Source: Monocercomonoides exilis PA203
Taxonomy: Eukaryota > Protista > Preaxostyla
Direction: 5' to 3'
NCBI GenBank assembly: GCA_001643675.2
Contig: LSRY02000008.1
Location: 1,736,001-1,800,000 of the forward strand
Length of the DNA stretch: 64,000 bases
In this document: piece by piece, positions 3,221 to 62,343 of the stretch
Layout: every line of letters begins with the position of its first letter
Position numbering within the stretch: the first letter of the stretch is position 1
Notes under the pieces: model-generated
Seen by the model: the letters and a program-made list of their open reading frames with translations, nothing else
The model's database searches: none
Told to the model about the DNA's origin: nothing
Translations under genes and position numbers: made by a program

Positions 3221-4640
3221 ATGAAGGGGAAGAAGGAAGAAACGTTGAAGGAAAGAAATTTCTTGTCCAATCTTCAACCCCATTCCTCATCACCTTCAAT
3301 CCCTCTTGTTTCACTCTCAAACTCAGCAAATGAAGCATGCTCACCTTCAACGACTACATCATCCCAAACCTCATATCTAATGAATAGTTGTTCATTCTCA
3401 TCAGTTTGTGACGTTTATGATAGCGGGATTGTTCATTCCCTCAATGACCCCTTGACCTCTTTGACCACCTCAAACACCTCGTTTGTTGGGTGTTGCAGAA
3501 CAAAAATGTTGAATGCAATGGAACTGAAACTAATAAGAAACAACCAGAAAGACAGAACATAACAGCCAATGGACCGAATACATTCACGTGGTGTGAGTGG
3601 AGTGGATCGAAGACAACAGGAGAAAGCGATTCTGTTTCAGATGGAATATCGAGTGGCGGGGCTATCTGCATGTACAATCTCAATTCTGGAGAGCTCTCTG
3701 TTTCACATTGTCTGTTTAATAATTGCTTTGCATACAGCCGTGGAGGTGGAATTATGTGCAACACAATCAAGACTGTGCGTATCGAAAATAACATGTTGTC
3801 TTGCACAGCAACCATTACGGAGGAGGATTATACGTTGTAACGATTTCAACATGTGTACGAATCAGCGGATGTGAATTCAAAATTGTAAAGCAAATTATAA
3901 TGGAGGAGGTCTTGATCTTGATAATTTTAATGCCATAGGAGCAGGATGCATTCCAACAGAAAATGGAGAAGGGGAGAGTGCGTGTGTGTTTGACTGCAGT
4001 TTCACTTCATGCTCGGTGACAAATTACTACGGTGGAGGCATGTATTGTGCAAATATTCCAATCACGCAATTCAAAATGAGGAGCATTCAGTTTATTTCAT
4101 GTTCAGCATCGGCACATGGAGGTGGATTGGAGCTGTATCCATACAGACAAGCATCACAAAATGACGTGATTTATTGTTATTTTTTGTTCTTTCATGAATG
4201 CAAATGCTCTGCAGATACGCCATATGGTCATGATATGGTATATTATGATCGATATAATGTTTTCTTATCTTCGAATAATCCGTTCTATGAATGTTACACC
4301 ACAAACACAGATGACCAGAGGGTGCTATGGACATGATTATACGGATTCCAAGGGTTGGACATATCAGCACACAGAAAAGTGGGATTGGCTGAAGAGAGGA
4401 TTCTCAACCGATTTGTGGCTGTGAGTGGTGGCGGTGAAGAAGTTGTGTGGACTGGATGAGTCAAGTGCATGCAGAACCATTGGTGTTGCAGTTGAAAAGA
4501 GCGTGATTCAGGTGAGCCTGTCAGTCACGCTGATGGGAGGGGATCACACAAGCGAGGTGACAACAATTGAGATTGGAGAAAAGAAGATTTCAGTCATTGG
4601 GAAAGAAGAGAAACACGTTCGATTGGAACAGAAACAAATT
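3221..4640 (+). pseudogene. Cys-rich GGG-repeat beta-helix cassette 1 (C-module type A), frameshifted
   Basis: ORF pieces 3221-3562, 3490-3840, 3986-4336 and 4425- carry family motifs (SCSFSSVCDVYD, FTWCEW, GGAICMY, FDCSFTSCS, YGHD, NPFYECYTTN, CGLDESSACRTI). It has several multi-base deletions, and homology ends at SIGTE (~4632). Confidence 0.85.
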
Positions 4641-7600
4641 TTTTATATTTCATCATTCTCTTCTTTATCTTTTTCTGCTCATTCTTTCTTCTCCCTATTT
4701 ATCAACTATCCTCGAGAAAAAGTGATTCAACAGCTTCAGCTCATTTCATGTCAACTATTAATCTACAAAAATCTTATTTTCAACATCCCTTCTCCTGTTA
4801 TTTTTCCGAGCAGATATTTGAGACAACAAAGAACTCGGAGCAGAAAGACAGATTCAGAGCATTTGTTGATACTGCTAATTGCGAAGGATATGCTTAATAT
4901 TCATTTGTTCTTTCCAACTTTTTCATCAATAATTTTTATTTGTTCAAAAAAGCTTTTTATCCCTCTTTTTATTCCTCATCTTCTTCTTCATCCTCATCTC
5001 AATTTTTTATTCTTTCTTTTCCTTTTCTTTCATTTTGTTTCCTTGTGTTATCTTTTATTATTGTTCTTTTATCAAATTAAAGTGAATAACAATGATATTT
5101 TTTTTAACTTTTTCTTTATTGGATGAAAATTGATTGGGACAACACGTGTCGATTGAACGACATACTGTGTGAGAAAAACAAAAATCAAAACAAAGGAGAA
5201 AACAAAAGAAAATAATGTTGAATGTCATGGAGAAATAGGATTGTCCATTTTCAAGGAAAGCTTTTCAGCTCCAAATGGCTATTCGATGCATCGGCTGGCT
5301 GAAAATATAAACATGCGTGATAATAAAATTCAATCTGTTGATCAAATAATGTTGGCGAAAGCCAAAAACAAAAATCTGTTTGACAAAAATGAAAAAGAAA
5401 AATCTAATTCGAAAATAATCAAAGAAAAAAAGAATAAAAATTATAAGAATATTTAAATACCATCGAAATTGATGAAGCAAATGATGATATCCTCACACTC
5501 AGAAGATAAATTCGTCATTATTTCGCAAGTGCTTCTTCCACACCAACACCAACTCCAATGCCAACACCAACAGACAGCACAACAGCTGAGCCTCATCTCT
5601 TCCAATTGGCCACTTCTCAAAATGACAAATTTCTTTCTTTTTCTCTCTTTTTCTCTCTTTCTCTCTTTCTCTCTTTATGTTTCTCCTGTTTCGCAGTTGC
5701 ATCTCAAATCATTCGCATCTTCTATCTGACAAAGCACACAGCCTTCTTCTGCTCTGCTTATCCCCCTTGCTGTCTCAGATGGCCACACACACGCACACAC
5801 ACAAACACCTCTTCCTTTCCCAATGCAACAAATTGGCGCTCAATTCCTCATCAAGAATTCATTTCTTGCCTTTGAAAAAAGATACCCATGTTGAAAAGAA
5901 AAATCGTGAAAATTGTGCTTTTCTTCTTCTTTTCCCTCTTTTCTGATGAAAAATCAATTGATCAAAAAAATAAATAAATCAATTAATCAATAAAACAAAC
6001 AAACAAACCTTCAAACATCATCAATTTGAATGTCTCTTCACCCATTTTCCCCTTCCATTGCAAATATCAAATGAATATTTCATCCCATCTTCATTTCTTC
6101 ATCCAAATTGCTTGGCTGTTTCCTCCTCAATAAAGAAAGCAATTAGCGAATAACGCTCTTCATTCATCTCTCTGCCTCAATCGCCTTCTTCTGATCTGTC
6201 ATTGAAATGTGATTGAAACAAACAACGAAGAAATAATTTCATTTTCGTTATAAGAACTTTTTGTGTGAATCAGTGAAGAATGATGATGTTGTTGTTGAAG
6301 ATGGCTTCGTATTCCAACAAATGCTGCAATCAAATAGAACCAATGATGGCAGGGGAAGGATGTTCATCATTGATTGAATGGCAAATGGCAGTCTCGTTGT
6401 CTTTTCATATCGTTTCTTTGGTAGAGTTTCTCCACTGAGGCTGAAATTGGTGGTAAGACAATGAATGTGGTGAAGAAATATGTAGAATTTCTTTGTAGGA
6501 GGACAATAATATGCTTGGTCGAAAATCATGTTCCGAGGCTCCAATAACGCTTCTTTGGAGGGAACGGTGAATAACTCAAAAGGATCAGTGAAAAATCATC
6601 AAGACTCAATCTGCAAAAATGCTTGCGAGCTTCATCAGCTCAATCCATGATACGAATTATTGCATTTCGCTCATTTTGGAGACAAACAAATCGCTTTGTT
6701 CAAATCAACGGAGAAATTGTGACAAGCAACCAAAAAATCGTCATCGGCTCAAGTCGGCAAAGACATCGAAGAGAAAATATCGGATATACGCTTGATCATG
6801 TAGCAATACTCCAAATATTCTCATTCCACGTGATTTGTGAGGGATTCAGTTCTGCAATGTTTTGTAAAAAAAATAATAAATTCAAATACTGCATCGGTTG
6901 TTGTCCAAAAAATAGTGCATGAAATCCATGTGGCAGGATTCATGTTTGGCAATATGCAACCAGTATTTCGAGCAATCGCACTCAATCTTGAGTGTTCATG
7001 AAAACATCTCGTTTCTTGTCGTTTCCCCTCCTTTCACACAAAACACAAAATGGAAAGATTCGCTGAAGCTGCTCGTGCGCCAGACTCTGTTGGTGGATGC
7101 CCAGCAACTGCGAGTGTCTTTTTGTGGAACAACTGCTGGAACAAACAGAATGAGGAAAGTTAGTGATTTCGATGCAAAACTGTTCATTGTTCGTTCCAAA
7201 AAAGACATGTCATTTTCGGTAATGAAGCACCTGGCAAGCCTCTCCATTCTGCTCGCGATGTCACATCGTTGCTCAAGAAGTATTCGGTGTTTCTGGAGAA
7301 AAAAAATAAGTTTTGTTCTCACAAAATCACATTCCAACTTATATTTCGATCAATAAATTAGAAAAAAACAATCAATCAACTTGAATTCAACAAAAAATAA
7401 AGATAATAAATTATTATTAATTGTGATTATTGTTGATAGTTGTTTTGTTGCAAAAGGCGAGTTTTGAATCGTTTCTTTTTTGAAAAAAATATATTTGAAA
7501 AATTCGAAATAAATATCATTTCAAGGAATTTGGACAAGATAACAGTGAATCCGCAAACCGTGATATCAAAAACTCTTTGTCTAAATATCTTGTTGATTTG

Positions 7601-9922: not shown

Positions 9923-11850
9923 CTAATGAATATATTTCACTTTCATAAAAACAACCACACTCGGCGAAGGACTTGCACTTGAGTTGCAATCAACCTCCAT
10001 GTGCAATAAACCAAGATGACCTGTCGTCACACTGAACAACGTTCCTACTGCTGATGATGATGAAAGGGCTCCTGTTCCAATCGAACTCTCCGTCCTCCCT
10101 TTCCCAATGACTGAAATTTTCTTCGATCCAATCTCAATTGTTGTTGTCTCGCTTGTGTGATTCCCTTCCATCAGTGTGACTGACAGGCTCACCTGGATCA
10201 CGCTCCGACTGACTGCAACACCAATGGTTCGGCATGCACTTGACTCATCCAGTCCACATAACTCTTCTGCGTTTCCTCCGCTCACCGCCACAAACCGATT
10301 GAGAATCCCTCTTTTCAGCCAATTCCACTTTTCGGTGTGCTTGTGGATCCAATTAGTACCATCATAGTGTTCATAAAACATTCTCCTATCATCAGCATTT
10401 GTAGTATAGCACTCGTAAAACGGATTACCAGAATCCAAAAATTGTTTGTGATAATCTGCATATGCAATATCATGGCCGAATGGAGGATTGGCCGAGCATT
10501 TGCATTCATGGAAGAAAAGGAAATAGCAATAAATAATATCATTTTGCGATGTTTGTCTATTCGGATACAATCTTAAACCTCCGCCATATGCAGTTGCAGA
10601 GCAAGAAATAAACTGAATGCTCCTCATTTTGAATTGCGTGGCAGGAACAGAAGCGCAATACATGCCTCCACCATAATTATTTGTAATTGAGCATGAAGTG
10701 AAACAGCAGTCAAACACGCACGCACTCTCCCTTCTCCATTTTCTGTTGGAATGAATCCTGTTCCTGAAACCTTGAAATCATTAAGATAAAGCCCTCCTCC
10801 ATAGCCAGAAGCCTGACAACTCCGAAATTCACATTCGCTGATTCGAGTGCATGTTGAAGTTGTATAAACACATATCCCTCCTCCAATCCATGTTCGAGCA
10901 GTGCACGAGTCGAATGTGTTATTTGTAATATCAACCGATTTGATGTTGTAGCAATGAATGCCTCCTCCCGAATAATACGCTTCACATCCACTGAACGAAC
11001 AGCATTTCACTGAAAGCGTTCCAGACGATAAGCTGAACATGCAGATTGCTCCACCATTCGAAGAGCCATCGGTGTATGAGCTAACTTCTCCTGTTGTCTT
11101 CGATCCGTTCCACTCGCACCAAGTGAATGAATTAGCTCCATTGGCTGTTGTGTTCTGTCTCCCTGGCTGTTTCTTATTATCTGCATTTCCTTCACATACA
11201 ACATTTCTTGTCCGACAACATCCAACGAATGATGTGTTCGAAACAGATAAGGAAGCCAAGGGGCTGTTCAGAGAAGGAACAATCCCATCATATGCATCAC
11301 AAACAGACGAAAATGAGCAACTGCTCATCAAACATGAGGCTTGGGTTGACGTAGTTGTTGAAGGTGAACATGCATCATTTGCTGTCGAGATGTTGAAAAA
11401 GTGAGTTTGGAGAGGGACATTAGGGAATAGAAGGGGATGACAGGAATGGGGCTGATGAGACACAAAAAGAAGAGAAATGTGATTCACTCACTGAAATACT
11501 CCCTTCAATGCCTTCTCCATCTCCATCTCCTTCTCTTCCTTTTCCTCTTCCTCTTTCTCCTCCTTCTCCTCCTTTTTCTTCATCTCCACTCTTCTCCCTT
11601 CCATGTCCCTTCCCTCCAAACAGCCTGCCTGAATAGATCTCTCTCCCTCTTCCCCACCCTTTCAATGTAATGTTTGTCAACACCCCAATGCTCCCACTCA
11701 CATCAAATGCCCCTGCCCCATCATCCTTCCCCATTCCCACAACACACCCTCTCACCACAACCACACTCCCCTTCCTTCCACTCACCCCCAACCACCAGCC
11801 CTGCCCTCTTCATCTCAACTGATGAGTTCCACAACTCTCTCATATAAATA
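9923..11850 (-). pseudogene. Beta-helix cassette 2 (type A module, longer 3' end, Gly-rich N-terminal part retained)
   Basis: ORFs 11420-11791, 10624-11487 and 9923-10717 join through small indels in homopolymer runs. Full family motif set present. May be an intact frame in vivo. Confidence 0.85.
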
Positions 11851-12599: not shown

Positions 12600-14138
12600 G
12601 AAAAACAGCTTCTGTTCCAATCGAACTCTCCGTCCTCCCTTTCCCAATGACCGAAATCTTCTTTGATCCAATCTCAATAGTTGTTGCTTCGCTTGTGTGA
12701 TTCCCTTCCATCAGCGTGACTGACAAGCTAATCTGCACCTCACACATCTCAAACGCCTTCTTCACTGTCAGACACGGATATGTTTCATTTGACCCACACA
12801 ACTCAAAATTATCATTTCCACCAACAGAAACATATATCGTCTTATCCTTTAGCCAATCCACTTTTCTGTGTGTTGATATGACCAAGCACCTGCATCAGCA
12901 TAATTGTTGCAAAGCAGATCCTCTTATCATTTGTGTTTGTGGTGTAACATTCATGAAACGGATTTCCTGAATCCAAATACAGATTGTATGTATCGACATA
13001 CTCAATATCATGCCGTATGGATTAGTTGCATCCCTGCAATTGCATTCATGAAAGAAAAAAATAACAATAAGTTCCATTGACTGGTTTTTCTGTTTATTCT
13101 GGTCAATCTTAATCCTCCTCCCTCTTGTCGCGCCGAACATGAAATGAACTGTATGCTCCTCATTTTGAATGCAACTGGAACAGTGTACAACACATCCCTC
13201 CACCAATCAGAATTTACAACCGAGCATGAAGTGAAACTGCAGTCAAACACACACGCACTTTCCCCTTCTCCACTTTCTGTTTCAATGCATCCTGTTCCAG
13301 ATACCTGAAATGATTGCAATATTAATCCTCCTCCATAGCTTGATGCCTTGCAATTCCGGAATTCACAATCACTGATCCGAGCACATGATGAAATAGAGCT
13401 GGCATACATTCCGCCTCCATGTTGGTTTTGAGCTGTACACGCATTGAACACATTATTTTCGATATACACAGATTTGATTGTGTTGCACATAATTCCACCT
13501 CCACGGCTGTATGCAAAGCAATTATTAAACAGACAACGTGAAACTGAGAGCTCTCCATTTCCCTTGTTGTACATCCAAATTGCACCTCCACTCGATTTTC
13601 CATCAGCATACGAATCACTTTCTCCTGTCGTCTTCGATCCATTCCATTCACACCAAACAAATTTATTCGCTCCATTTTCTGTTGTATTTTGCCTCTCTGG
13701 AGTCAACTTTCTGTCTGAAGTTCCTTCACAAACAACATTCCTTGCCCGACAACATTTAATAAAAGAGGTGTTTGAAGCAGTCAGAGAAGTAAAGGGATTG
13801 TTGAGGGAAGTGACAATCCCGCCATCATATGCATCACAAACAGACGTAAATGAGCAGCTGCTCATCAGACATGTAGCTTGGGTTGACATTGTGGTTGAAG
13901 GTGAACATGCGTCATTTGCTGTTGATATGTTGAAAAATGTCAAATGAGAAAGAGATATAAGGGGTGAAGACTCATGATAAAAAATTGGCAAAAAAGAAGA
14001 AGTGCAACTCACACACAAAAATACTATCTTCGACGCTGTCTTCTCTTCCTCTGCCTCTTGGAGCAATCTGGCAAAATATTTAATAAATTCAAAATCCTTC
14101 TTCCCGCCTCTTCCGCTGCTTCTCAAAGGGATATCCAT
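12600..14138 (-). pseudogene. Beta-helix cassette 3 (type B module), frameshifted
   Basis: ORFs 13008-14138, 12895-13206 and 12439-12885. Module WLKDKTIYVSV..CGSNETYPCLTVKKAFEMC. Homology ends at SSIGTE (~12610). Confidence 0.85.
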
Positions 14139-15499
14139 AAGAGAAAAGCATCTTTTTCTTCAGTGCCACCAAATGGATACGGAACTCCAATGTTATTTGT
14201 CAACTGTTTTCCACAGAATCTCTTTTTCTTCTGTTGTCATTTCCTGTCTTCTTTCCAAATTCAATTTTCTCGCATATATTTTGAACACATGCAAGGGCTC
14301 CGGTATCAATAAAAAAACAGAAAAAAATAAAGAAAAATTACAGACAACGAAAATAAATATATTTCAATATAAAAAAGATGAAATTAAAAACAAAGTATTT
14401 TTATAAAAATAAAAATTAATAAATAAACTGTTCCTCTTTCTTTTTGCAATCTTCCTCTTCTCCTTCCTCTTCTTTTCCTGCCAGCCCCAGCCTATTCAGC
14501 ATTGCTTTCCTCCGTTCTTCACCTCGCAAACAGACCTCCCAGCCCTGTCACTTCTCAATGCTTCCAATGCTATTTCGTGCTATCCTCTCATTGCGCCAGA
14601 TCAATCTTCACTTTTGTCAATCATTTTCACAAAAAGCACATATCTCTTTGAAAATAAAACCATAAACAAACAAACAAATAAACAAATAAACAAATAAATA
14701 TCGAATTCACAAACGCAACATGTGTCAACATCCAGAAATGATAACTGCCCCCTTCCGCTTCCCTTCCCCTCCTCTTCCCTGTCCTTTCCGCTCAACTCTC
14801 CCTCCCCCAGCAAAGCACACGACCCACACCCTGACCATTTGCTTCATCGCAGCAACACCAAAACCCCAAGATGTCACCTCTCTCAGCCATCATTCACCCC
14901 ATTTTTCTGCCATCTTCCTTTGCTCTTTCCTTCTCATCCCATCTGCTCCCCTCTCCTGCTGCCAATTTCCAACACTTCCACAGCCTTCATCTTTCTGTTG
15001 CCTCTTCGCCTTTTTCCCTCCTCCCTTTCATTCCTCTATTGATTTATTTCATTTTTTCATATGTAATTTTCCATTTTTCTCTCTTTCTCTCTCTAAAACA
15101 TCACAATTCCCCAACCAACACTCTTCTGCTAGCATCCATTTCATTTGCAGTGTGCAACACTGCCCCCACCGTTACTGCCCGCAATACACATTATCCACAA
15201 CAAATCACAAGAATCAAAAAAACATAGCAAACACATCCTAACAACCTGCTGAAAACAAAAGGCAAAACATCCTCATCTTCTAAAATTTTCTTTCCTCTTG
15301 TCCTCCCTTCATCTCCACAATTCTCCCCAAAAAACACACAAAACAATCCCAATTATCGAATTTGCCAACAACCCAGACATCAAATCCCTTTCAAATTCAA
15401 AACACCCACAACCACCTCGCCGTAATGCAAATAACAGCCGTCATTGCACATCCACCGGCCTTTGCCTCAGTGCTCGGAGTGTACCGAGAAAAATACAAT

Positions 15500-16470
15500 T
15501 TGTCTATTCCAGTCTTCAATTATGCATACGATCGTCACAATTTTGAAAAAAAGAAAAAACTGAAAACTACCTTTGTAAATGGGAGGGCATCAGACAATAA
15601 TATTTTATGGTGGATTTGCTGAATTATTGTTTTTGAAGGCGTCTTGTGCGACTGGGACTGGTGTTGAATTTGGAAAGACTTGAAGCGATTTTTTGTACAA
15701 GAAAGGGGATGGAGCACCGATGCTTTGAAAATATTATATATATCACGGGATATATGTATTTCTGATAATTCTATATAATGTGAAGATATTTTCATCCGTA
15801 TCCTTCCCAAGTCATGATTCGGACAATTTTATATTAAAAGTCAATTTATTTTTTTGAAGAGGACAATAGCAGGGAATCACACCAATATTACCTACAAACA
15901 GCAAATATTAAAACATGAGGATTTTTTAACGAAAAATTTCACAGTTATTTTTGATGCAATATGCAATGGGTCGAAATGCAACGAAAAACGAGTTTTAATG
16001 GAGCAGAAATTCATGGAGTCGGAAAATGCCAAATACAAAAAGGAAGTGTGACCAATTTTTCTGAAAAGGCTGCCTTTTTTTTAAAAAGAGGAAGAGGACA
16101 TTTTCAGAAAATTTGTTGGAGGGATTGGAGTGGATGCATTGAATGGAAAATGGAGACAAGTGGCTGAAACAAGAGATTGGCGGTTGTTGCTGGACGAATG
16201 GATTTTCTTGGGTTGATAAGGACAAGACAATATTTTTATGGACTGAGAAGAGTAGTGGAACTAAATTTGATTGCTTGGTTTGAGAGCGATAATGCAAGAA
16301 AAACAGGCAGTTCGGCGTAATACAAGCAGCTGGAGGCAAATGACAGGCAAAATGGATTTGAATCATTTTGCAATCGCCTTTGGCATTGTATCATCGAAGG
16401 GTTATCCATTGAAGCAGAGAACGAGGTTTTTTTTGAAGCAATCTTCGACAGAAAATATCCGACATTAAAG
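15500..16470 (+). other. Core element copy 2
   Basis: Shares GAGGAAGAGGACATTTTCA, GCAGCTGGAGGCAAAT..CAGGCAAAATGGA and the conserved motif with copy 1. Confidence 0.7.
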
Positions 16471-21560: not shown

Positions 21561-21621
21561 CTTGAAAAGGTGTGCCCTCGTTAGTCAGAGCCCATCTTTT
21601 TTTTTTCATTATTTCCTTTTT

Positions 21622-21654
<33 letters not shown>

Positions 21655-23238: not shown

Positions 23239-23251
23239 AAAATAATCACCC
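22996..23251 (-). mobile_element. ~256-bp MITE-like element, TIR GGGTGATTATTTTTGAAAT
   Basis: Ends TAGTGATTATTTTTGATAT ... ATTTCAAAAATAATCACCC; non-coding; dispersed copies of equal length. Confidence 0.65.
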
Positions 23252-41802: not shown

Positions 41803-41834
<32 letters not shown>

Positions 41835-41878: not shown

Positions 41879-41937
41879 ATTTGATTCAACAAAATGAATT
41901 TATTTTTTGATCATTACAAAATTGAAAACAAAATTAA

Positions 41938-49423: not shown

Positions 49424-50381
49424 GGTCGCATCCCTTTTTCCATCTTTTCTGCCCCTTCTTCATCGTCTGCTTTCCCCGTATCCCTTTTTCTTCTGTTGCA
49501 ATCTTCTGCTTGTTTTCAAAAATCCATTTTCTTTCATCGCTTTAATTGGCATTCGTAAAAAAATTCCAAGTACACAACAATACAAATATACAAGAAAAAT
49601 GAACGAAATAAAATCATTTATGAAATATATGAAAATCAGAAAAATAAGCATCAAGGCATAACCTTTGTGCAAGAAAAAAATAAAACAAAATAAAACAAAA
49701 CATACAATAAACCTTTTTATTCAATTTTTTTTTCGCTTACTCTTTCCAATTCGTCGTTTCTTCTTCTTCTTTTCCTCCTCCTCCTCCTCCTCTAAATATT
49801 GCTCCTTTTTGCTAACACACCCGCCTGCTCCATCTCTGCCGGCGATCCCGATGCCAATAGCATTTTCCCCATTTTGCTCAAAAGGAAAGAAAAGAAAATA
49901 GTCAAAGTCCAGTCCTCAGATTCCCTGATTCAAAAAACTTCAACAACTTGATTCCAATAAATAGATCAGAATGGCGAAGAAGGCAAAGAAGTAATTATTG
50001 AAGAAGTATTGAACGACAAATAGAAGGAGATGATAAAACTGATGAATCAGGAGAAGTGGATGATGATGATGTTGTTGTTGATGATGATGACCAAGAAGAA
50101 GTTATTTTAAAAATTATTTACAAAAAAGTTAGTGATTATAAATGAGCATTTGACAGCACCTTCACAGTTAGCAGCTCCAAGTGCTCCACCTCTATCTTTC
50201 TACTCCTCCTTCTTCGTTGTCTCAAAATCTTGCCAGGCAAAAATAATAAGAGAAGGGAAATTGAAAATAAGACGCTTGCAGATTTAAAGTTGAAGTGAAA
50301 TGAATTGAAATAGCCAAGGAACAATTTTTAGAAGAAAAATTGCATGAAGAAAATAAAATGAGCAGAAGAAGATGAGAAGGA

Positions 50382-51800
50382 TTAACGGCTAAAATTCGCT
50401 CCTGTTCTAATTGAACTCTTCTCTTTGCCTGTCCCAATGATTGAAATCTTCTTTTCCCCAATCTCAACTGTTGTTGCCTCACTCACATGATTCCCTTCCA
50501 GCAGCGTGACTGTCAAGCTAATCTGCACCTCACACATCTCAAACGCTTTCTTCACTGTCAGACACGGATATGTTGTATTTGCCCCACAAAGTGGAGTAGT
50601 ATCATTCCCATTCACAGAAACATATATCGTCTTGTCCTTCAGCCAATCCTTCTTTTCCGTGTGCTGATAAGACCAAACACTTGCATTTGCATAATTGTAT
50701 GCATAGCACACTCTCTTGTCATCTGTGTTTGTGGTGTAGCATTCTTTGAACGGATTGTCTGAAGATAAAAAGACACTGTAGTAATCATTATACATAACGT
50801 CATGACCGTAAGAGGGGTTGTTATAACATTTGCACTCGTGGAAGAAAAGGAAATAACAATAGATTCCATCATCAGGTGCTGTTGGCCTGTTTGGATACAA
50901 TCTCATTCCTCCGCCCTCTTGCCGTGCTGAACATGAGATAAACTGCATGCTCCTCATTTTGAATGCAACTGGAACAGCAGCACAATACATACCTCCGCCG
51001 TAATAATTTGTAACCGAGCACGAAGTGAAACTGCAGTCAAACACACACGCACTCTCCCCTTCTCCATTTTCTGTTGGGATGCATCCTGTTCCTGAAACAT
51101 TAAAATTGTTAAGATTAAGACCACCTCCATAGCTATTTGCTTTGCAATTCTGGAATTCACAATCGCTGATCAGAACACATGATGAAATCGTATAAATAAG
51201 CATTCCACCCCCATAATGATTCTGAGCTGTGCATGCATTAAATGAGTTGTTCTCTATTTTAACTTCTTTTATGCTTGCGCACATTATTCCCCCTCCACGA
51301 CTGTATGCAAAACAATTATTAAATATACAATGGGAAACAGACACAGAGGCAGATGATAAACCATTCACACAGATTGCCCCTCCGCTCGATTCTCCATCCG
51401 TCCATGAATCACTGCTTCCTGTTGTTTTCGATCCGTTCCACTCGCACCAAGTGAATGTATTCGGTCCATTGTCAGTAATGTTTTGCCTCCCTGGATTCAA
51501 CTTTCCATCTGAAGTTCCTTCACATACAACGTTTCTTGTCCGGCAGCATCCAATGAATGAGGTGTTTGAAGCTGTCAAAGAGGCCAAGGGGTTGTTGAGG
51601 GAATGAACAATCCCGCTATCATAAACGTCACAAACTGATGAGAATGAGCAGCTGTTCATCATACACGTGGTTTGGGTTGACGTAGTTGTTGAAGGCAAGC
51701 ATGCATCATTTGCTGTTGAAATGTTGAAAAATGACAGGTGAGAGAGGGATACAAGGGGTATGGAAGGTGATGAAAGAAATGCTGTTGAAGATGAGATAAG
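50382..51800 (-). CDS. Beta-helix cassette 10 (438-aa ORF plus open upstream framework, type B)
   Basis: ORF 50382-51698. The upstream frame reads AFLSSPSIPLVSLSHLSFFNISTANDAC. Ends SSIRTGANFSR*. Confidence 0.85.
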   Translation of the reverse strand, partial: LISSSTAFLSSPSIPLVSLSHLSFFNISTANDACLPSTTTSTQTTCMMNSCSFSSVCDVYDSGIVHSLNNPLASLTASNTSFIGCCRTRNVVCEGTSDGKLNPGRQNITDNGPNTFTWCEWNGSKTTGSSDSWTDGESSGGAICVNGLSSASVSVSHCIFNNCFAYSRGGGIMCASIKEVKIENNSFNACTAQNHYGGGMLIYTISSCVLISDCEFQNCKANSYGGGLNLNNFNVSGTGCIPTENGEGESACVFDCSFTSCSVTNYYGGGMYCAAVPVAFKMRSMQFISCSARQEGGGMRLYPNRPTAPDDGIYCYFLFFHECKCYNNPSYGHDVMYNDYYSVFLSSDNPFKECYTTNTDDKRVCYAYNYANASVWSYQHTEKKDWLKDKTIYVSVNGNDTTPLCGANTTYPCLTVKKAFEMCEVQISLTVTLLEGNHVSEATTVEIGEKKISIIGTGKEKSSIRTGANFSR

Positions 51801-52024
51801 AGATTCGCATGTCGAAACGCTTCCATCTTCACCTCCTTATCTTCTCCTTGCTCTTGGAGTCATGTCGCAAAATATCTCAAGAAGCTCATATCCCATTGTC
51901 TTGCCTCTTCCACTTCTTTTGATTACATGCTCTCTTTAAATATCTTTTTCTCCGCTTTTCTCCTTTTGCCTTCTTTCCATATTCCATTCGCATTCTTCGC
52001 TTTTGAATGTTAGCACAAAAGTCC

Positions 52025-52099
52025 CTGTTATGATTAAACAATTAAGAAAAAATATTAAAAATACATAAAATTGTTATTAAAAATATCACAAATCAGTAC
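52025..52099 (-). other. Putative intron in leader of cassette 10
   Basis: GTACTG...AACAG, homologous context. Confidence 0.6.
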
Positions 52100-53069
52100 C
52101 ATTTTCTTTTTGCAATCTGCTTCCTTTTCTTCATCTTCATTTCCTTCTTGACTTCCTGTCACATTTCTTCTTCAGCCATTTCTTCAATTTTCCGATTATT
52201 CTTTTCCGTCGCTTCGCCTTCTTCTTTTTCAAAATTTAACATAAATCTTCAAAGGTCTCCTCTTCCATTCATTTCATTTAAAACCTCTGGCTTATTCATC
52301 TATATTCTCAAAAAAATTGTCATTGCCTGATTTCTGAAAAGCATCCAGCATGCTCTTTCCCCCATGTTCATTCATTCCCTGAAAATGTCCTTCCATAAAT
52401 CTTAATCCCTCAAAAAAAAAAATAAAATGTTTGAAAAATTGGAGGAAAAAAATAATACAAAACAAACTCTGAAATATATTTATCGCCAATCTTCACACAC
52501 TTTCTTCTTCTTCTTCGAGTGCCTCTCAAAATATTGTTCTTTTCTGCCAACAACATCCAGCTGATCTGTCTCCGCTGCCAATCTCAACATCAATGAAAGT
52601 GATTCTGTTCTGCTTCCAAAAATTTGCTTATTTCCAATTCTTGGCGCTGATTCCACTCGAATAACACATAAATAATAAAAATCCATTAAAATGATTTGGT
52701 GAAGAAGAAGAAGATAATGACCAAGAAGGGATAAAATTGACATATAATTTCAATTTCCGAAAAGGAGCATACAAAAACAATGATGGTGAAGAAGATGATG
52801 AAGAAATATAAAAATTAGTTGCATTCGATGAAGAATAAATATTTGCAGAAGGTGATGAAGGTGATGAAGGTGATAATCAAAAGTGAAGAGAAAAATACAC
52901 GATTTCATATCATTTGGAGGTGCATATGGAAACACGATTGCGATGTTGGTGATGAAAACAATAAGGCTGAAGAAGAAAGGGGAGAATAGACGGAATAGTT
53001 GAAGAAGACAATGAAGACGATGAAGAGGATGAATAAGATGTTAAGGAAATTTCATATGAAAGATAATTT

Positions 53070-53990
53070 TCTGTTGGAAGATATCCTCAACATAACAATC
53101 TCGTTCTCTGCTCCAGTTGCAAATACTTCGATGGCACAATGCCTAATGCGATAGCAAAATGACTCAAATCCATTTTGCCTATCATTTGCCTCCAGCTGCT
53201 TGCATCACGCCAAATTGTCTGTATTTCTCGGATTTTCGCCCCTCAACCCAAGCAATCAAGTGCCATTCTACCCCTTTCACCTCGTTCCATAAAATCAATG
53301 TCTTGCCCTTCTTCTCCAAAGAAAGGCACCTTGTTCTGCTCCAATTGCCTCCAATGTCCTGTTTCAGTCACTTGTCCCAATCTCTTCAACAAAATTTTTT
53401 GAAAATGTCCCCGCCATCTTCAAATGGTGCTCCCATTTCATAGAGATTGGCTGTTCTTCCTTTTTGCCTTGGATGTCTTCCAACCCCGTTCATTTCCGCT
53501 CCATCAAAATTCATTTTTCATCGCATTTCGAAACATCGCGCATGTTGAGTCCATTATAAGTCACATAAACATTTGTAACAAAATACATTCAGGCTCTAAT
53601 ATATTTGTAAGGTAACATTTGTCTCGCTTCCTCGTTGTTCTGCTCTGCATAGAATAAATTGTCCATTTTATATAAGTTGTCTGAATCACGACTTTGGAGA
53701 GGATACGGATGGAAATATCTTCACAACATATAGCACAATGTAAAATACATACATTGAAAATTCTTCATTTCCATCGAAAATATTGTTGCTTCACAGTTCT
53801 CCATCAATCAATATGAACAATTTCATCTTCCATTAAACAGATATTGTTTTTGTAATACCCAACCTTTTCACTGGAAATATTTCACTTAGTCAACCTGTCT
53901 TTGTTTTAGCTTCGGAATCTGACCCCGTTGACAGTTTCTGAGCATTTGGCAAAACTTGATCATTTTCCATAACGAATAAGGGCCACAAAA
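53070..53990 (-). other. Core element copy 5
   Basis: Reverse-complement homolog of 1400-2340. Confidence 0.75.
53690..53726 (-). other. Conserved 37-nt motif
   Basis: Exact reverse complement of 1686-1722. Confidence 0.8.
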
Positions 53991-56014
53991 GAAAAGAAAG
54001 TCCTACTCGATGCATTGTGGCTGAATGGACATATAAAGGCAATGTGATTAAAAAAATATGTATTTCTGGTGTGGGGTGATGGAGCTGAGCTTTTGGAGGG
54101 GCAGGGTTACGAAGGGGAAAGGAGCGATAAAAGGATGTTTTTTGTGGAAAAGAGGTGTTTTCGTGAGATTTCAGAGGCAAAATGGATGTGTGGCGGATAG
54201 ATAGGGATGAGATTTAGAGGGGTTGTTTTTGAGATTTTTATCATTGGGAAGGTGTTGAGGCAGTGTTTATTATTTGAGAAAAGGAATTTGTTGTTGAGAA
54301 GGTGGGATAAGATGGAAAACAAGAAGGGCCGAAAATGAGTGGAGTGAATGGAATATATTTATTGGAGGAGAGGACGAGAAATGGAGAGATATGTGGAGGA
54401 GGTGTTATTTATTTTCAAATGCAGGGAGAGAGAGGAGGGCTCATATGAGGCGGAACAAGAAGAAAAATTTTTGTGAGTGCGTGTATAATTAGAGAGGGAA
54501 GCGGGGTTGAAGGGGAAAAAAAAGTGAGAGATATTTTTTTAATCTTTTTTAATTTTTTATTGAAAGGACCGTTTGGCCGCGCCTCTCATTTGCAGGACAA
54601 GTGTTGGAGGCGGATGCGGAGGAAGACGGGAAGAAGGAACATCAGCGCTGGCACTTTGCATTGGAGGTGTGGAGACAGAGGAAGATGAGGAGCTGACTAT
54701 GGGAGGTGTTTTGCAATGGAAAGAGACAGAAAAAGGATGGAGATATTTATATTTTTTTGGTTGGAAGAAGGGGAATGGGAGATGGGGAGACAGGGACTGT
54801 GATATTTGGCGTGGTGGTATTGTTGTTGTTTTGGGGGGAAATGGAGAGAAGAAGAAGAGGTTTTGCGAAAAGAGATGGGAAGGGGTTATTCAGATGGAAT
54901 CTTCTTCTTTACCAGTTTTTTATGGAATGGAGTTTGTGGAGGTTATTTGAGTGGAAGAAGAATAGAGGGTTGTGGTTTGATTAATATTTATTTGAGGAAG
55001 CAGAAAAGAAGCGAAGGCGGGAAAGATGGGCTTTGTTGGCAGAACGGAGAAATATTTAGAAAAGTAGAAAGAAAAAAGTCGCGAAGGGGGGTTGCTATAA
55101 AAGGCATGAATATATATTTTTTTATTACGATTTTTCATATATTATTTTTGTTGAAATCAGGGTTTTTGCAAAGATATTTTATGCAAATGAATGAACATGG
55201 AATATGGAAAGAGAGGATTAAAAATGCATAAAAGAAGTCTGGATGAAATAAATGAAGGGGCGCATAGAGGAGTGAGCTGGAGGAGAAATGCGAAATGAAA
55301 TGAAAGAAAGATAATTTTGAAGGTTTTGGAAGGAGTGCTGGACAAATGTGGTTGAAAGCAAAAAGAGAGAATGGGAAAATGATGAAAAGACAAAAAACAT
55401 GCACAAATAATTGAGAAGAAGAAAAGAAAGTGTGCCTAACAAAGAAGAAAAAGAAAGAGAAAGGAATTTTAGAGAAAACTTGATGTGAGAGGCTTTTATG
55501 AGGAAATAATTCAAAAATTTGGAGAAAGTTCTAAAAAGAAGATGGAAATATACCTCGGAATATTAATCAAAATAAAAGGCTTGAAGATAGAGGTCACACT
55601 CCGCGTCTATTTCAGAAGGGTTTGTTTTTGCGGGAGATAACGGAAGGGACGAGGAAGCGAGGAATGCGGTGATTCTTTGACAAAAGTTGGCAAGATTGAA
55701 GGATAAAAAAGGTATGATATTTTTATTAATTATATTATTTGACTATTTTTTATATGATTTATTGTTTTTTCTTTCTATTTGTTTGAACAAAATTGTTTTT
55801 GCTTGCGTTTTCTAAAACAGCGAGGAAAAGCAGAATAAGATCAGACGATAGAAAGTGAAGGGCAATGAGCAGAATCAGCGTGGGAAAGAGCTTTATAGGA
55901 TCATTAATAATAAAAAGGCATTGGCAGTGAAGGTTCTTTTACACATTTTTTAAACAAGATACTTTATATGAGCAGCGAAAAAGGAAGGAAAAGAGTTTTA
56001 GGGGTATTGGAATT

Positions 56015-57904
56015 ATGATGAAAATAATATTGAGAGGGGTTGGGAGAGGAAGGGATGAAGGAGGACAACGAGGTGGTGAAGAAAGAGGTGGAAAAGGAAG
56101 AGGAGAAGAAAGAGAAGAAGAAAGTGAAGGAGGTGGGAGTGTGTTTGTGTGTGAGTCGAATTTCTCATCTTTTTGTGTGTCTTCAGCCCCGTTTCTGGCA
56201 CCTCCTCTGACACGCCTTGTGACACTCACCCGACTGACCTTCTTCAACATCTCCACAAATCCACCAAAAATAACACATCTGGATGAAGGGCCGAGCCAAA
56301 GAGTGTTTCTGATGAGTGGATGTGAATTTGTGTTGGTATGGGATGTGTATGATGGGGGCATTGTCCCCTCGCTCAACAGCCCTTCATCGTCATTGGCTGC
56401 CTCGAACACCTCGTTTGTCAGGTGCTATCGCACTCAGAATGTTGAAGTCAATGGGAGTGAAGGGAATCCATCGAAACCAGCGAGACAGCAGATAGCAGAC
56501 AATGGGGCGAATTCGTTCACTTGGTGTGTGTGGAATGGGTCAAATACAACTGGAACAAACTCTGGTTATTCTTATGGAGATTCAAATGGCGGAGCGATTT
56601 ACATGTATAACAAGGCATCAGGAACACTTTCAGTGAAGTTTTGTTCGTTCAATGATTGTTATGCGCATTATGATGGCGGAGGAATATTGTGTGTTTCAAT
56701 CAATTCTATCAAGATTGAGAACAACTCGTTCAATGCTTGTACAGCAAAAAATTGGGCTGGAGGAGGATTGTATGCTAATTCGATTTCGTCATGTGTCAGG
56801 ATCAGCGGTTGCGAATTCAAGAGTTGCAAAGCGAAAAATTATGGAGGAGGTTTATGTCTCGATTCTTTTAATGTTTCTGGAACCAATTGTATTGGAACAG
56901 AAAGTGGGAAAGGGGAGAGCGCTTGTGTGTTTGAGTGTTTCTTCGCTTCGTGCTCTCTTACAAATTCTTATGGCGGAGGGATGTATTGTTATGGTGTCCC
57001 ATCTGCTTTCAAAATGAGGAGCCTCCAATTTATTTCTTGCTCAGCAGTGTCATATGGTGGAGGATTTTGGTTTAATCCAAGCCAATCAACAGCTCCAGGC
57101 AACAAGCTTTATTGCTATTTCTTCTTCTTCCACGATTGCAGTTGCAATGCCTCCACTCCATATGGACACGATGTAATGTATTACGATTATTACAATCTCT
57201 TCTCATCGAATAACCCATTCTGTGAATCGTATACAACGAATAGCGATGCAAACAGATTATGCTATGCTTATTATTCAGGCAGTTGGCAATATCAGCATAC
57301 ACAAAAGAAGGATTGGCTGAAGGAAGGGATGAAGGATCGGTATGTTGGGGTGAGCGGAGATGATACAAACAATCTGTGTGGGATGAGTGAGGCAGCGCCG
57401 TGCAAGACAGTGGGGCATGCAGTGGGGTCGAGCATGGCGCAGCTGAGCTCGACAATCACAGTGCTGGGTGGGAGGCATGTGAGCGAAGAGAAGACGATCA
57501 GTGTTGGGGGAAAGAAGATTTCTGTTTTGGGGAGAGGGAAGACGGTGAGTGTGATTGGGACAAGTGCGCTTTCTCCGCCTGCAACAACGCTGTTCAGCAT
57601 ATCTTCTGGCCAACTGGAGGTGGGGCATGTGGGGATCGATCACAACGCGACAAGAAGCTCATCGCCGAGTGTGTTTGTGGTGTCACTGGGGAGCGGGACG
57701 CTTTTGCTGGAGGATGTGGTGATCGACTCTTCGACATCAGGTGGGAATGGAATGACGAAGTGTGTGTTTGAAGTGGCACTGAGGCAGCTGAAAACGATTG
57801 ATGTGGAGATAGAAAATATGAAAGTGAGCCAACTTCTGTTTGTCGAACCATCATCAGTAGGATTGGCATTGAGAGAATATTATTTATTGTTTATTTTGTT
57901 CTGA
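56015..57904 (+). CDS. Beta-helix cassette 11 (629 aa, divergent subfamily, type C module)
   Basis: ATG-initiated uninterrupted ORF with family motifs. Module WLKEGMKDRYVGVSGDD..CGMSEAAPCKTV. No evident signal peptide or TM segment. Confidence 0.85.
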   Translation: MMKIILRGVGRGRDEGGQRGGEERGGKGRGEEREEESEGGGSVFVCESNFSSFCVSSAPFLAPPLTRLVTLTRLTFFNISTNPPKITHLDEGPSQRVFLMSGCEFVLVWDVYDGGIVPSLNSPSSSLAASNTSFVRCYRTQNVEVNGSEGNPSKPARQQIADNGANSFTWCVWNGSNTTGTNSGYSYGDSNGGAIYMYNKASGTLSVKFCSFNDCYAHYDGGGILCVSINSIKIENNSFNACTAKNWAGGGLYANSISSCVRISGCEFKSCKAKNYGGGLCLDSFNVSGTNCIGTESGKGESACVFECFFASCSLTNSYGGGMYCYGVPSAFKMRSLQFISCSAVSYGGGFWFNPSQSTAPGNKLYCYFFFFHDCSCNASTPYGHDVMYYDYYNLFSSNNPFCESYTTNSDANRLCYAYYSGSWQYQHTQKKDWLKEGMKDRYVGVSGDDTNNLCGMSEAAPCKTVGHAVGSSMAQLSSTITVLGGRHVSEEKTISVGGKKISVLGRGKTVSVIGTSALSPPATTLFSISSGQLEVGHVGIDHNATRSSSPSVFVVSLGSGTLLLEDVVIDSSTSGGNGMTKCVFEVALRQLKTIDVEIENMKVSQLLFVEPSSVGLALREYYLLFILF

Positions 57905-60454
57905 CCGCATAACACATTGACTGAAGAGAGAGAGAAAATAGAAATTCTGAGATTAACTTTTTAATATCATTTTTAGTGAAATGAAATATGATGAAGTGTT
58001 ATTTTGCATTGAGAATACGTATGCTTTACAAATTAGATTATTTTTTATGAATATGATTTGTTGATAAAAATTTTGTGGATGAGTGAAAAGATGGAATAAA
58101 TGAAAAAACACACAAAAAACAATGGTAAAATGATAAATTTTAAATGAATTCAAATATCTGTTTTTGACAAATTATTCCAAAAATGATTGTTATTTGAACA
58201 TTCTGATAAAAAAGTTTCAAAATATTTGAAAATAGAAACAAAAATCGAAAATGCTTTAATTATCAAGAAAATTGTATTTATCAATAATCATGATTTATCA
58301 TTCACTTTAGATTGCAATGATAATAAAATTATCATAGATTTATATATGAGTTGCTTCAGTCTTCTGATGATTGTGAATCATGAACACCACAGATAATCTT
58401 GTTTCAATGAGTATATTATTGTGAAGGTATTGAATATATTCAAACTCTGAAAAATATATTATTTTCATTTTTTATAAAAAAAATAATTTAAAAGATAAGA
58501 GAAGAAATTGTGTCAAATCATTTACAGGGATCTGTATTGTTTTCAAAAATTAATTCAAATAGACATTTGTTCATAAATGGGTGATTATTCTTGAAATCAA
58601 ACAATATTTCTGGGAGTGAATTATTTCCTTTCTCACTTTTCAATGAAGTTATTTGTGTTGAATTGAAATTGACACAGAGAATGGTGATGAACAATAAATG
58701 TGATGTTTTTTCATTTTTGAAAGTCATTTGATGTTGTTTTCCAACAATCATCAAAAATCTGAATTTATTGACAGAACGTGTCTGATCTCAAAAAAATGGA
58801 TTAGCCTTGAATAGCATAATCCTCAAGCCAATGAATCATTGTTGGAATGGTATCAACAATTTATCCTTAGAAAAAGACATTTCATCTTGAAACACTCAGC
58901 TCTTGCTCGTTTCTCAATGATCGTTTGTTGTTGAGTCTTTTCATCTCAAACAAATGTTTTGACATATTTTTCTTCTTTATTCCTATTTCTTATTTTCAGA
59001 TGTCTCAACTTTTGTTGAAAAAGTGGAAAATTGAGAAAAAATTGGAATGACAAACTGAAAAGGAAAGGGGGATGGGTATTATTCTTTTTGAAAAGAAACA
59101 AATATTCATTTTAATTTCTGAAATGATTTTTGTGATTTTGTTTATCTTTTTTGTTCCAAAATTTTCAAATATCACGATTAATCAGCAAAAATATTCTATT
59201 TTTCCACATCAAAGAATGATTTCATTTCACATTCTCTTTTATTGAAATGAATATTTGTTTCTTTTCAAAAAGAATAATACCCATCCCCCTTTCCTCTTCA
59301 GTTTGTCATTCCAATTTTTTCTCAATTTTCCACTTTTTCAACAAAAGTTGAGACATCTGAAAATAAGAAATAGGAATAAAGAAGAAAAATATGTCAAAAC
59401 ATTTGTTTGAGATGAAAAGACTCAACAACAAACGATCATTGAGAAACGAGCAAGAGCTGAGTGTTTCAAGATGAAATGTCTTTTTCTAAGGATAAATTGT
59501 TGATACCATTCCAACAATGATTCATTGGCTTGAGGATTATGCTATTCAAGGCTAATCCATTTTTTTGAGATCAGACACGTTCTGTCAATAAATTCAGATT
59601 TTTGATGATTGTTGGAAAACAACATCAAATGACTTTCAAAAATGAAAAAACATCACATTTATTGTTCATCACCATTCTCTGTGTCAATTTCAATTCAACA
59701 CAAATAACTTCATTGAAAAGTGAGAAAGGAAATAATTCACTCCCAGAAATATTGTTTGATTTCAAGAATAATCACCCATTTATGAACAAATGTCTATTTG
59801 AATTAATTTTTGAAAACAATACAGATCCCTGTAAATGATTTGACACAATTTCTTCTCTTATCTTTTAAATTATTTTTTTTATAAAAAATGAAAATAATAT
59901 ATTTTTCAGAGTTTGAATATATTCAATACCTTCACAATAATATACTCATTGAAACAAGATTATCTGTGGTGTTCATGATTCACAATCATCAGAAGACTGA
60001 AGCAACTCATATATAAATCTATGATAATTTTATTATCATTGCAATCTAAAGTGAATGATAAATCATGATTATTGATAAATACAATTTTCTTGATAATTAA
60101 AGCATTTTCGATTTTTGTTTCTATTTTCAAATATTTTGAAACTTTTTTATCAGAATGTTCAAATAACAATCATTTTTGGAATAATTTGTCAAAAAAACAG
60201 ATATTTGAATTCATTTAAAATTTATCATTTTACCATTGTTTTTTGTGTGTTTTTTCATTTATTCCATCTTTTCACTCATCCACAAAATTTTTATCAACAA
60301 ATCATATTCATAAAAAAATAATCTAATTTGTAAAGCATACGTATTCTCAATGCAAAATAACACTTCATCATATTTCATTTCACTAAAAATGATATTAAAA
60401 AGTTAATCTCAGAATTTCTATTTTCTCTCTCTCTTCAGTCAATGTGTTATGCGG

Positions 60455-62343
60455 TCAGAACAAAATAAACAATAAATAATATTCTCTCAATGCCAATCCT
60501 ACTGATGATGGTTCGACAAACAGAAGTTGGCTCACTTTCATATTTTCTATCTCCACATCAATCGTTTTCAGCTGCCTCAGTGCCACTTCAAACACACACT
60601 TCGTCATTCCATTCCCACCTGATGTCGAAGAGTCGATCACCACATCCTCCAGCAAAAGCGTCCCGCTCCCCAGTGACACCACAAACACACTCGGCGATGA
60701 GCTTCTTGTCGCGTTGTGATCGATCCCCACATGCCCCACCTCCAGTTGGCCAGAAGATATGCTGAACAGCGTTGTTGCAGGCGGAGAAAGCGCACTTGTC
60801 CCAATCACACTCACCGTCTTCCCTCTCCCCAAAACAGAAATCTTCTTTCCCCCAACACTGATCGTCTTCTCTTCGCTCACATGCCTCCCACCCAGCACTG
60901 TGATTGTCGAGCTCAGCTGCGCCATGCTCGACCCCACTGCATGCCCCACTGTCTTGCACGGCGCTGCCTCACTCATCCCACACAGATTGTTTGTATCATC
61001 TCCGCTCACCCCAACATACCGATCCTTCATCCCTTCCTTCAGCCAATCCTTCTTTTGTGTATGCTGATATTGCCAACTGCCTGAATAATAAGCATAGCAT
61101 AATCTGTTTGCATCGCTATTCGTTGTATACGATTCACAGAATGGGTTATTCGATGAGAAGAGATTGTAATAATCGTAATACATTACATCGTGTCCATATG
61201 GAGTGGAGGCATTGCAACTGCAATCGTGGAAGAAGAAGAAATAGCAATAAAGCTTGTTGCCTGGAGCTGTTGATTGGCTTGGATTAAACCAAAATCCTCC
61301 ACCATATGACACTGCTGAGCAAGAAATAAATTGGAGGCTCCTCATTTTGAAAGCAGATGGGACACCATAACAATACATCCCTCCGCCATAAGAATTTGTA
61401 AGAGAGCACGAAGCGAAGAAACACTCAAACACACAAGCGCTCTCCCCTTTCCCACTTTCTGTTCCAATACAATTGGTTCCAGAAACATTAAAAGAATCGA
61501 GACATAAACCTCCTCCATAATTTTTCGCTTTGCAACTCTTGAATTCGCAACCGCTGATCCTGACACATGACGAAATCGAATTAGCATACAATCCTCCTCC
61601 AGCCCAATTTTTTGCTGTACAAGCATTGAACGAGTTGTTCTCAATCTTGATAGAATTGATTGAAACACACAATATTCCTCCGCCATCATAATGCGCATAA
61701 CAATCATTGAACGAACAAAACTTCACTGAAAGTGTTCCTGATGCCTTGTTATACATGTAAATCGCTCCGCCATTTGAATCTCCATAAGAATAACCAGAGT
61801 TTGTTCCAGTTGTATTTGACCCATTCCACACACACCAAGTGAACGAATTCGCCCCATTGTCTGCTATCTGCTGTCTCGCTGGTTTCGATGGATTCCCTTC
61901 ACTCCCATTGACTTCAACATTCTGAGTGCGATAGCACCTGACAAACGAGGTGTTCGAGGCAGCCAATGACGATGAAGGGCTGTTGAGCGAGGGACAATGC
62001 CCCCATCATACACATCCCATACCAACACAAATTCACATCCACTCATCAGAAACACTCTTTGGCTCGGCCCTTCATCCAGATGTGTTATTTTTGGTGGATT
62101 TGTGGAGATGTTGAAGAAGGTCAGTCGGGTGAGTGTCACAAGGCGTGTCAGAGGAGGTGCCAGAAACGGGGCTGAAGACACACAAAAAGATGAGAAATTC
62201 GACTCACACACAAACACACTCCCACCTCCTTCACTTTCTTCTTCTCTTTCTTCTCCTCTTCCTTTTCCACCTCTTTCTTCACCACCTCGTTGTCCTCCTT
62301 CATCCCTTCCTCTCCCAACCCCTCTCAATATTATTTTCATCAT
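60455..62343 (-). CDS. Beta-helix cassette 12; inverted copy of cassette 11
   Basis: Mirror of 56015-57904. One frameshift at a G-run (~61991, 3 vs 4 bases), probably a sequencing error. Confidence 0.85.

Follow-up and report, generated by a model that had tools for sequence, protein, structure and literature searches.

What keeps a gene fragment readable when it has neither the beginning nor the end of the protein to which it belongs? A 64,000-nucleotide (nt) stretch of the Monocercomonoides exilis PA203 genome (contig C80, positions 1736001-1800000 in an assembly of 82.3 Mb and 101 contigs; hereafter the window) raises this question, as it holds 12 partial copies, here called cassettes, of one protein family. 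The original prediction interpreted them as a silent archive of donors copied into one or a few full-length expressed loci elsewhere. We show here that the 12 copies are cut-down versions of the membrane-distal N-terminal beta-helix domain of giant surface proteins that resemble tyrosine-kinase-like (TKL) receptor kinases, and that they evolve like coding sequence and stay open instead of decaying. In the explanation that we consider best, and to which we give about an even chance, the cassettes form a pool of receptor-tip modules that is under selection, recombines, is transcribed at least in part, and exchanges sequence with full-length genes.

The cassettes are truncated copies of a receptor ectodomain module

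A tblastn search of the window, with an open reading frame (ORF) of 629 amino acids (aa) as query, returned exactly 12 copies, at the places where they had been predicted:

3221-4700, + strand: cassette 1, the most degraded copy; frame changes at ~3500, ~3810 and ~3880, in-frame stop at 4334
9983-11785, - strand: cassette 2; partial leader kept (GSVVVVRGC...FDVSGSIGVLTNITLKG); frame change at ~10730; ORFs of 264 and 287 aa
12589-14141, - strand: cassette 3; ORF of 376 aa; frame change at an A7 run at ~13055
17369-19012, + strand: cassette 4; no substitutions relative to cassette 6; single-base homopolymer deficits at 18581, 18781 and 18987
24330-25790, - strand: cassette 5; ORF of 376 aa; in-frame stops at 25706 and 25481 in the 5' part
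29050-30795, + strand: cassette 6; ORF of 564 aa including a partial leader; without signal peptide
35012-36931, - strand: cassette 7, of the long class that ends at ~residue 807 of the full-length protein; ORF of 562 aa
45638-47143, - strand: cassette 8; ORF of 501 aa; a 488-aa product (P0119) is in the protein collection searched
47967-49423, - strand: cassette 9; ORF of 402 aa; frame change at a T5 run at ~48225
50382-51824, - strand: cassette 10; ORF of 438 aa; exact 222-nt tract at 51192-51413
56015-57904, + strand: cassette 11; ORF of 629 aa; full-length homology ends at 57863-57877, homology to fragments on contig C42 continues to the palindrome centre
60455-62343, - strand: cassette 12, the mirror of cassette 11; one C-run length difference at ~61990

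The central domain had been described as open for 376-629 codons in seven copies. The range stands, but the count was too low: ten of the 12 copies contain ORFs of at least 350 aa (376, 473, 376, 564, 562, 501, 402, 438, 629, and 503 aa), and only copies 1 and 2 fall below this length.

A genome search for full-length family members, as proposed with the original prediction, found dozens of family ORFs of 2,000-4,500 aa. Three relatives were extracted and examined (C41:579065, C80:1865002, and C69:1418643), each a single ORF of 4,317-4,494 aa. All three contain an N-terminal hydrophobic segment that resembles a signal peptide and one very strong transmembrane helix at about residue 4,000. A cytoplasmic tail with the C-lobe of the Pfam family PK_Tyr_Ser-Thr was recognized in two of the three, in one by Pfam (E = 9.8e-9) and in the other by eye. 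The sole tail scanned by Pfam, that of C41:579065, matches in the C-lobe only; the tail of C80:1865002 is of low complexity and was left out of the scan. The full-length family is thus predicted to comprise type-I membrane proteins of 3,000-4,500 aa with a signal peptide, a giant ectodomain, a transmembrane helix, and a TKL-kinase-like tail, although many of the 'TKL kinases' of this receptor family may be pseudokinases or have no kinase at all. PMC6759080 reports 332 predicted tyrosine kinases in M. exilis, 320 of them TKL, as the largest gene family of the species; the full-length relatives of the cassettes are this family. Neither the dozens of long ORFs nor the 332 published kinases agree with the one or few full-length loci that had been postulated.

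Each cassette is homologous to the N-terminal ectodomain module of the three full-length proteins (residues ~260-807; E = 0 to 1e-63 by tblastn and HMMER). As predicted, the copies are cut at both ends, since they cover residues ~260 to ~646, 713, 742, or 807 and nothing else. The remaining ~3,500 residues of the three relatives, past ~807, have no match in the window, and a low-stringency search of the window found no trace of the first ~45 residues, which hold the signal peptide. All 12 cassettes therefore lack the signal peptide, transmembrane helix, and kinase-like tail. The 480 residues that follow the truncation point match almost only long ORFs in the genome, and none in the arrays on C80, C53, and C71. 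Cassette ORFs start in leader or low-complexity sequence, the position of the start codon is not conserved, and in copies 5 and 10 the frame is open well upstream of the first ATG. The N-terminal module of full-length proteins shares 70-80% aa identity with cassette 11 and 65-73% with cassettes 6 and 7; at the DNA level, identity between a window cassette and any sampled full-length gene reaches at most ~81-85%.

The cassette domain is rich in cysteines and full of N-x-S/T sequons, a composition typical of extracellular domains. Pfam returned nothing above threshold for three cassette ORFs, but the Beta_helix family (PF13229) was found in one paralog. A structure predicted with AlphaFold2 (AF2) has a confident beta-rich core at residues 140-480, with predicted local distance difference test (pLDDT) scores of 53-96 per 10-residue block, mostly at least 75. 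The top Foldseek matches were PL6 lyases, tailspikes, and antigen 43 (E = 2e-4 to 3e-2), weak matches with low TM-scores; the predicted fold is a right-handed parallel beta-helix. All named homologues of the cassettes are M. exilis entries of the type 'uncharacterized protein MONOS_...'. Related cassettes on other contigs are annotated as NCBI hypothetical proteins that start at the first in-frame Met, and the protein collection searched includes the products of window copies 11 and 8, without source or name.

Module arrays, tandem and giant palindromic, occur on C80 (about 1.15-1.96 Mb), C42, C53, and C71, and extrapolation from the match lists suggests that the genome-wide pool probably numbers hundreds of modules. 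Members of the cassette 11 subfamily on C42 are all cut at the point where cassette 11 is (57863-57877) and continue like it into one AT-rich spacer as far as the palindrome centre, whereas full-length genes lose homology to cassette 11 exactly at that point; these copies and cassette 11 hence descend from an already truncated ancestor. At the extreme start of another contig (C8:1940-3682) lies a short family member, protein P0014, with a long N-terminal leader (MCVCNGATS...) that matches the region just past the signal peptide of a full-length gene. P0014 ends (...ENYLLFILF) where the C42 modules and cassette 11 are also truncated. Should a signal peptide be present directly upstream within its 833-aa open frame, P0014 could be secreted as a short form.

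The cassettes stay open and evolve like coding sequence

Among C42-type cassettes, which have a common truncation point and spacer, differences at codon positions 1, 2, and 3 were 0.120, 0.097, and 0.221, with 0.168 in the spacer. The corresponding values for full-length genes were 0.125, 0.103, and 0.247. The ratio of nonsynonymous to synonymous divergence (dN/dS) was 0.31 for the cassettes compared to 0.27 for full-length genes, and 0.25 for window cassettes 3-10, at a dS of about 1.1; the profile of constraint along the domain is the same in cassettes and full-length genes. All 29 sampled cassettes were open over ~560-610 codons, whereas in a neutral simulation the probability of remaining open was 0.002-0.005 at 8% neutral lineage divergence. 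Codon-position rates, open frames, dN/dS, and simulation together do not fit neutrally decaying pseudogene fragments; cassette 1 alone looks decayed.

A second comparison is provided by a stop-rich element of ~700-900 nt that has been amplified together with the cassettes and is present in about 100 copies genome-wide, nearly all in array regions:

1500-2393, + strand: upstream element, full of stops
15749-16453 and 27488-28193, + strand; 53011-53913 and 39241-39304, - strand: other copies of the upstream element

Counted by hand from the tables, the upstream element contains ~66 stops in roughly 5,300 matched codons (about 12 per 1000) and the fragment cassettes genome-wide ~4 in roughly 34,000 (about 0.1 per 1000), an approximately 100-fold difference. 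The prediction that the frame is kept in the cassette only is borne out by this comparison.

Most frame breaks lie at homopolymer runs

Several cassettes are nevertheless interrupted, and a direct duplication within the window allows these breaks to be assessed:

13950-21926 and 25700-33676: direct duplication of 7.9 kb, with its left breakpoint inside cassettes 3 and 5

When the two copies were compared (14000-21900 with 25740-33650), all 26 indel columns were differences in homopolymer length, three of which break cassette 4 relative to cassette 6. There were no substitutions except two in the last 500-column bin (21432-21926). At the left breakpoint, the 5' end of cassette 3 (from ~13950) is identical to cassette 5, while the body is 72-85% identical. 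The break that distinguishes cassettes 11 and 12 is CCCC versus CCC, those in cassettes 1, 3, and 9 are at A or T runs, and that in cassette 2 is near short C/T runs. Homopolymers had been named as the site of most breaks, and rightly so. True in-frame stops occur in only two copies, cassette 1 and cassette 5, in the latter within the 5' part.

The assembly was built from Oxford Nanopore Technologies (ONT) reads with Canu, Nanopolish, and Pilon, as described in PMC8767320. Several frameshifts consist only of a change in homopolymer length between duplicates that are otherwise identical and are thus probably errors of the nanopore consensus, and most cassette 'lesions' are best read as residual errors of this kind. 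Frameshifts in repeats of the PA203 assembly should thus be polished before they are read as pseudogenization. Two other accounts were rejected: introns, since consecutive frames overlap, leaving no gap, and what breaks them is a change in homopolymer length, and an alternative genetic code, since the long ORFs are open under the standard code. At position 49295, in the 5' part of cassette 9, contigs from RNA libraries (Illumina-type, two runs) carry an extra AA relative to the assembly, which reflects either an error left in the assembly or the copy in the mirror arm.

Cassettes exchange sequence in short tracts

The region around cassettes 9-12 forms a giant palindrome:

47967-59115, 59116-59240 and 59241-64000: left arm, 125-nt loop, and right arm of a giant near-perfect palindrome, centre 59178

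Its arms include cassettes 9-11 and their mirror copies, and the right arm extends past the window, with the counterparts of cassettes 10 and 9 at C80:1802533 and C80:1805055. Four palindrome pairs on C42 are informative about recombination: the flanks have no substitutions at all, and every difference falls in discrete patches of 55-450 nt inside the cassette. This pattern is a gene-conversion footprint. Identical flanks with patchy interiors mean that conversion is much faster than point mutation and that the cassettes are acceptors; such arms offer a rare direct view of tract sizes and of the speed of conversion relative to mutation. For three patch alleles, another cassette contains a sequence that is 100% identical. 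The start of contig C71 repeats the combination of identical flank and different interior: comparing C71:4027-6707 with window positions 28061-30741, the upstream element is 100% identical, yet the adjoining cassette is only 89% identical (aa) to cassette 6.

Exact tracts also connect more distant copies. Cassette 10 (51192-51413) contains, in its most variable region, an exact tract of 222 nt in common with cassettes 4 and 6 against an overall identity of 82%. Between cassettes and longer genes, exact tracts of 202, 431, and 175 nt were found (ORFs of 3,163, 947, and 1,887 aa, respectively), and the distributions of the longest exact run are alike for fragment-full, fragment-fragment, and full-full pairs. 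The variable domain is therefore both intact, measured against neutral expectation, and recombining, as had been proposed.

The modules might also be functionless by-products, i.e., one or a few ancient fragments amplified in repeat-rich DNA by palindrome formation and unequal crossing-over, which look selected only because conversion keeps bringing in sequence from full-length genes under selection and because part of the seeming lesions stem from assembly error. The divergence values lend this some weight. Cassette dS (~0.36) exceeds the spacer p-distance (0.168), and arms with identical spacers differ by 0.048 at cassette third positions, so that much of the cassette variation must be imported and not new. 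However, window cassettes are 75-89% identical (aa) to other fragments and at most 73% to any full-length gene, and the donors identified are fragments too. Fragments and full-length genes do interleave in the tree with equal mean distances, cassette 1 is visibly decayed, and the family overlaps the 35% of the assembly classed as 'unclassified repeats' in PMC8767320. Against this, a mostly closed neutral pool should build up and spread stops, and amplification has affected the N-terminal module alone, never another part of the 9-13-kb genes. We consider the by-product explanation unlikely.

Splice junctions in two cassette leaders

Two introns were detected in cassette leaders:

47514-47596, - strand: intron in the leader of cassette 8; 83 nt, GT..AG, junction in two RNA libraries
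49540-49820, - strand: intron upstream of cassette 9; 281 nt, GT..AG, RNA-only junction

Both junctions are on the cassette strand and were present in two RNA libraries and in neither of two DNA libraries. The RNA evidence consists of short contigs, from which transcript start, end, strand, and level are not readable. It shows that the leaders, as distinct from the cassette bodies, of at least some modules are transcribed and spliced. Together with the NCBI annotation of related cassettes, this would speak against the silence that had been predicted. Both spliced leaders contain several upstream ATGs and short upstream ORFs only; that of cassette 9 yields a single 43-codon upstream ORF and no signal peptide.

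Another possible explanation is that the modules are ordinary expressed genes for beta-helix proteins of ~450-750 aa under purifying selection. Soluble decoys, ligand traps, or receptor partners that are intracellular or unconventionally exported are possible roles. Open frames at dN/dS of 0.25-0.31, RNA-only junctions in two leaders, and the many related cassettes annotated as NCBI proteins all agree with such proteins, as does P0014, in which a long N-terminal leader is combined with the truncated C-terminus. The structure of the individual copies fits less well: none of the 12 has a signal peptide despite an extracellular-type, Cys-rich and N-x-S/T-rich domain, the spliced leaders are burdened with upstream ATGs and short upstream ORFs, and start codons are unconserved, with frames open upstream of the first ATG in copies 5 and 10. 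On balance, we regard short proteins as a rather unlikely explanation of the modules.

Transcription likewise bears on the classical silent-cassette archive for antigenic variation, in which promoterless donors feed one or a few dedicated expression loci in one direction. The truncated, open, and mosaic state of the cassettes would suit an archive, and full-length genes are at hand beside or within the C80 array (at 1156114, 1865002, and 1925837). Yet two leaders are transcribed and spliced, the cassettes are themselves conversion acceptors, and the sampled full-length genes all stay at or below 85% identity to the window cassettes. Moreover, full-length genes number in the hundreds (PMC6759080), and each carries a diverged N-domain of its own. 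A unidirectional archive is accordingly very improbable.

Other features of the window

A smaller palindrome lies between two of the cassettes:

21979-23248: small palindrome with 608-nt arms and a 54-nt loop, within the AT-rich spacer between convergent cassettes 4 and 5

The copy of the upstream element at 1500-2393 contains a mini-ORF (~1588-1665) that resembles a signal peptide (MKLFILIAGWLCNNN...; MKLFILIAGWLCNNNIFDGNEEFL) and ends at a GTATGT donor, ~1.5 kb upstream of cassette 1 and pointing toward it. This mini-ORF is kept only in that copy, and its homologues upstream of cassettes 4, 6, and 10 are disrupted. A role of the GTATGT region as signal-peptide exon of the cassettes was rejected, as the ORF is present in one of three aligned copies (the others have a stop or have lost the GT); substitutions among these three have no clear three-base periodicity. 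The mini-ORF may be what is left of the first exon of a gene that became amplified together with the array unit.

A 1.2-kb (TTTCTT)n microsatellite with extreme AT skew (40714-41878, about 197 units) occupies part of the interval from cassette 7 to cassette 8, which is free of cassettes. A 15-nt tandem repeat (37917-38151, 15.7 copies), which encodes (DGDEE)n in one frame, lies just upstream of the cassette 7 leader. Rfam and tRNA scans of the 64-kb window found nothing. Transposase relics had been suspected between the cassettes, but none of the ten inter-cassette ORFs matched a Pfam family above threshold. The window has no ORFs of at least 200 aa other than those associated with cassettes, compared to a published mean coding density of ~63% on complete chromosomes, and the array region appears to lack ordinary genes.

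What maintains the modules

We propose that the arrays would act as a recombining reservoir of ectodomain-tip variants that exchange sequence with full-length receptor genes. Selection would keep the modules readable either directly, through a product, or at second order, because broken modules would spoil the genes they convert. That the modules are kept because they donate sequence is, in our judgement, about evenly balanced between true and false.

Several observations weigh against this proposal. Open frames and transcripts equally fit plain translation of the modules, and neutral modules, too, could stay open in a well-mixed conversion pool that receives sequence from full-length genes under selection. 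All three patch donors identified are other cassettes and not full-length genes, sequence context gives no polarity to the tracts between fragments and full-length genes, and ~32 of roughly 330 full-length N-domains were sampled. The loci were selected by score, a choice that may be biased toward intact copies. Intergenic DNA is covered by RNA contigs as well, so that the RNA libraries may contain genomic DNA. Lastly, near-perfect palindromes could be partly artefactual in an ONT/Canu assembly, although diverged copies of the same palindrome occur at many loci, which disfavours an artefact.

A bolder extension is that palindrome-housed, leaderless, selection-maintained modules serve as conversion donors for cassette-based diversification of the ligand- or antigen-facing tip in hundreds of giant receptor-kinase-like proteins, generating diversity within clonal lineages. 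Transcription of the modules or their palindromic structure might then promote recombination. We advance this extension tentatively and expect that it is more probably wrong than right. On the sequence evidence, part of the 'unclassified repeat' third of the assembly (PMC8767320) would be an organized, selected, and actively recombining receptor-tip pool in place of junk or simple family expansion. If modules do feed full-length genes, this would be the first cassette reservoir in Preaxostyla as far as our literature search found, and it would act on signalling-type receptors instead of a simple coat protein, in a gut commensal and not a blood pathogen.

Comparison with known systems

Within M. 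exilis, the nearest comparison is the TKL family itself: the cassettes are homologous to its N-terminal ectodomain module but lack the signal peptide, most of the ectodomain, the transmembrane helix, and the kinase tail. Term searches of PMC6759080 and PMC8767320 gave no hit on arrays of truncated modules, on palindromes, or on conversion patches, and full-text literature searches found nothing linking M. exilis to palindromes, gene conversion, or cassette arrays.

Elsewhere, the classical donor archives, i.e., Borrelia vls, the functional pseudogenes of Anaplasma msp2, and Neisseria pilS, have one expression site and unidirectional transfer. The M. exilis cassettes resemble them as partial genes truncated at both ends with an open variable region, and in segmental conversion tracts of tens to hundreds of bases, a textbook feature of these systems (for vls, see PMC11499132). 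They differ in that M. exilis has hundreds of complete genes, its cassettes are themselves converted, and leaders are spliced. The VSG arrays of Trypanosoma brucei likewise contain hundreds of arrayed, exposed N-terminal domains that form mosaics by segmental conversion (PMC3708902). There, silent genes and pseudogenes supply the single active of about 15 subtelomeric expression sites (PMC3708902, PMC3431348). In M. exilis, by contrast, almost every module has an open frame, there is no known expression site, and the proteins resemble receptors that end in a kinase tail.

Tail-to-tail near-identical pairs and long palindromes recall the inverted VSP pairs of Giardia and the ampliconic palindromes of sex chromosomes. 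In both, arm identity is maintained by conversion and the units are complete genes, whereas the M. exilis units are truncated modules and the arms differ by imported patches. Finally, the pseudo-V arrays of chickens and the VLR cassettes of lampreys are leaderless partial receptor modules that act as conversion donors for a binding surface. These animal systems are somatic and programmed and have one acceptor locus, and nothing of this sort was seen in M. exilis. They would be the closest functional analogy if the diversification reading is true.

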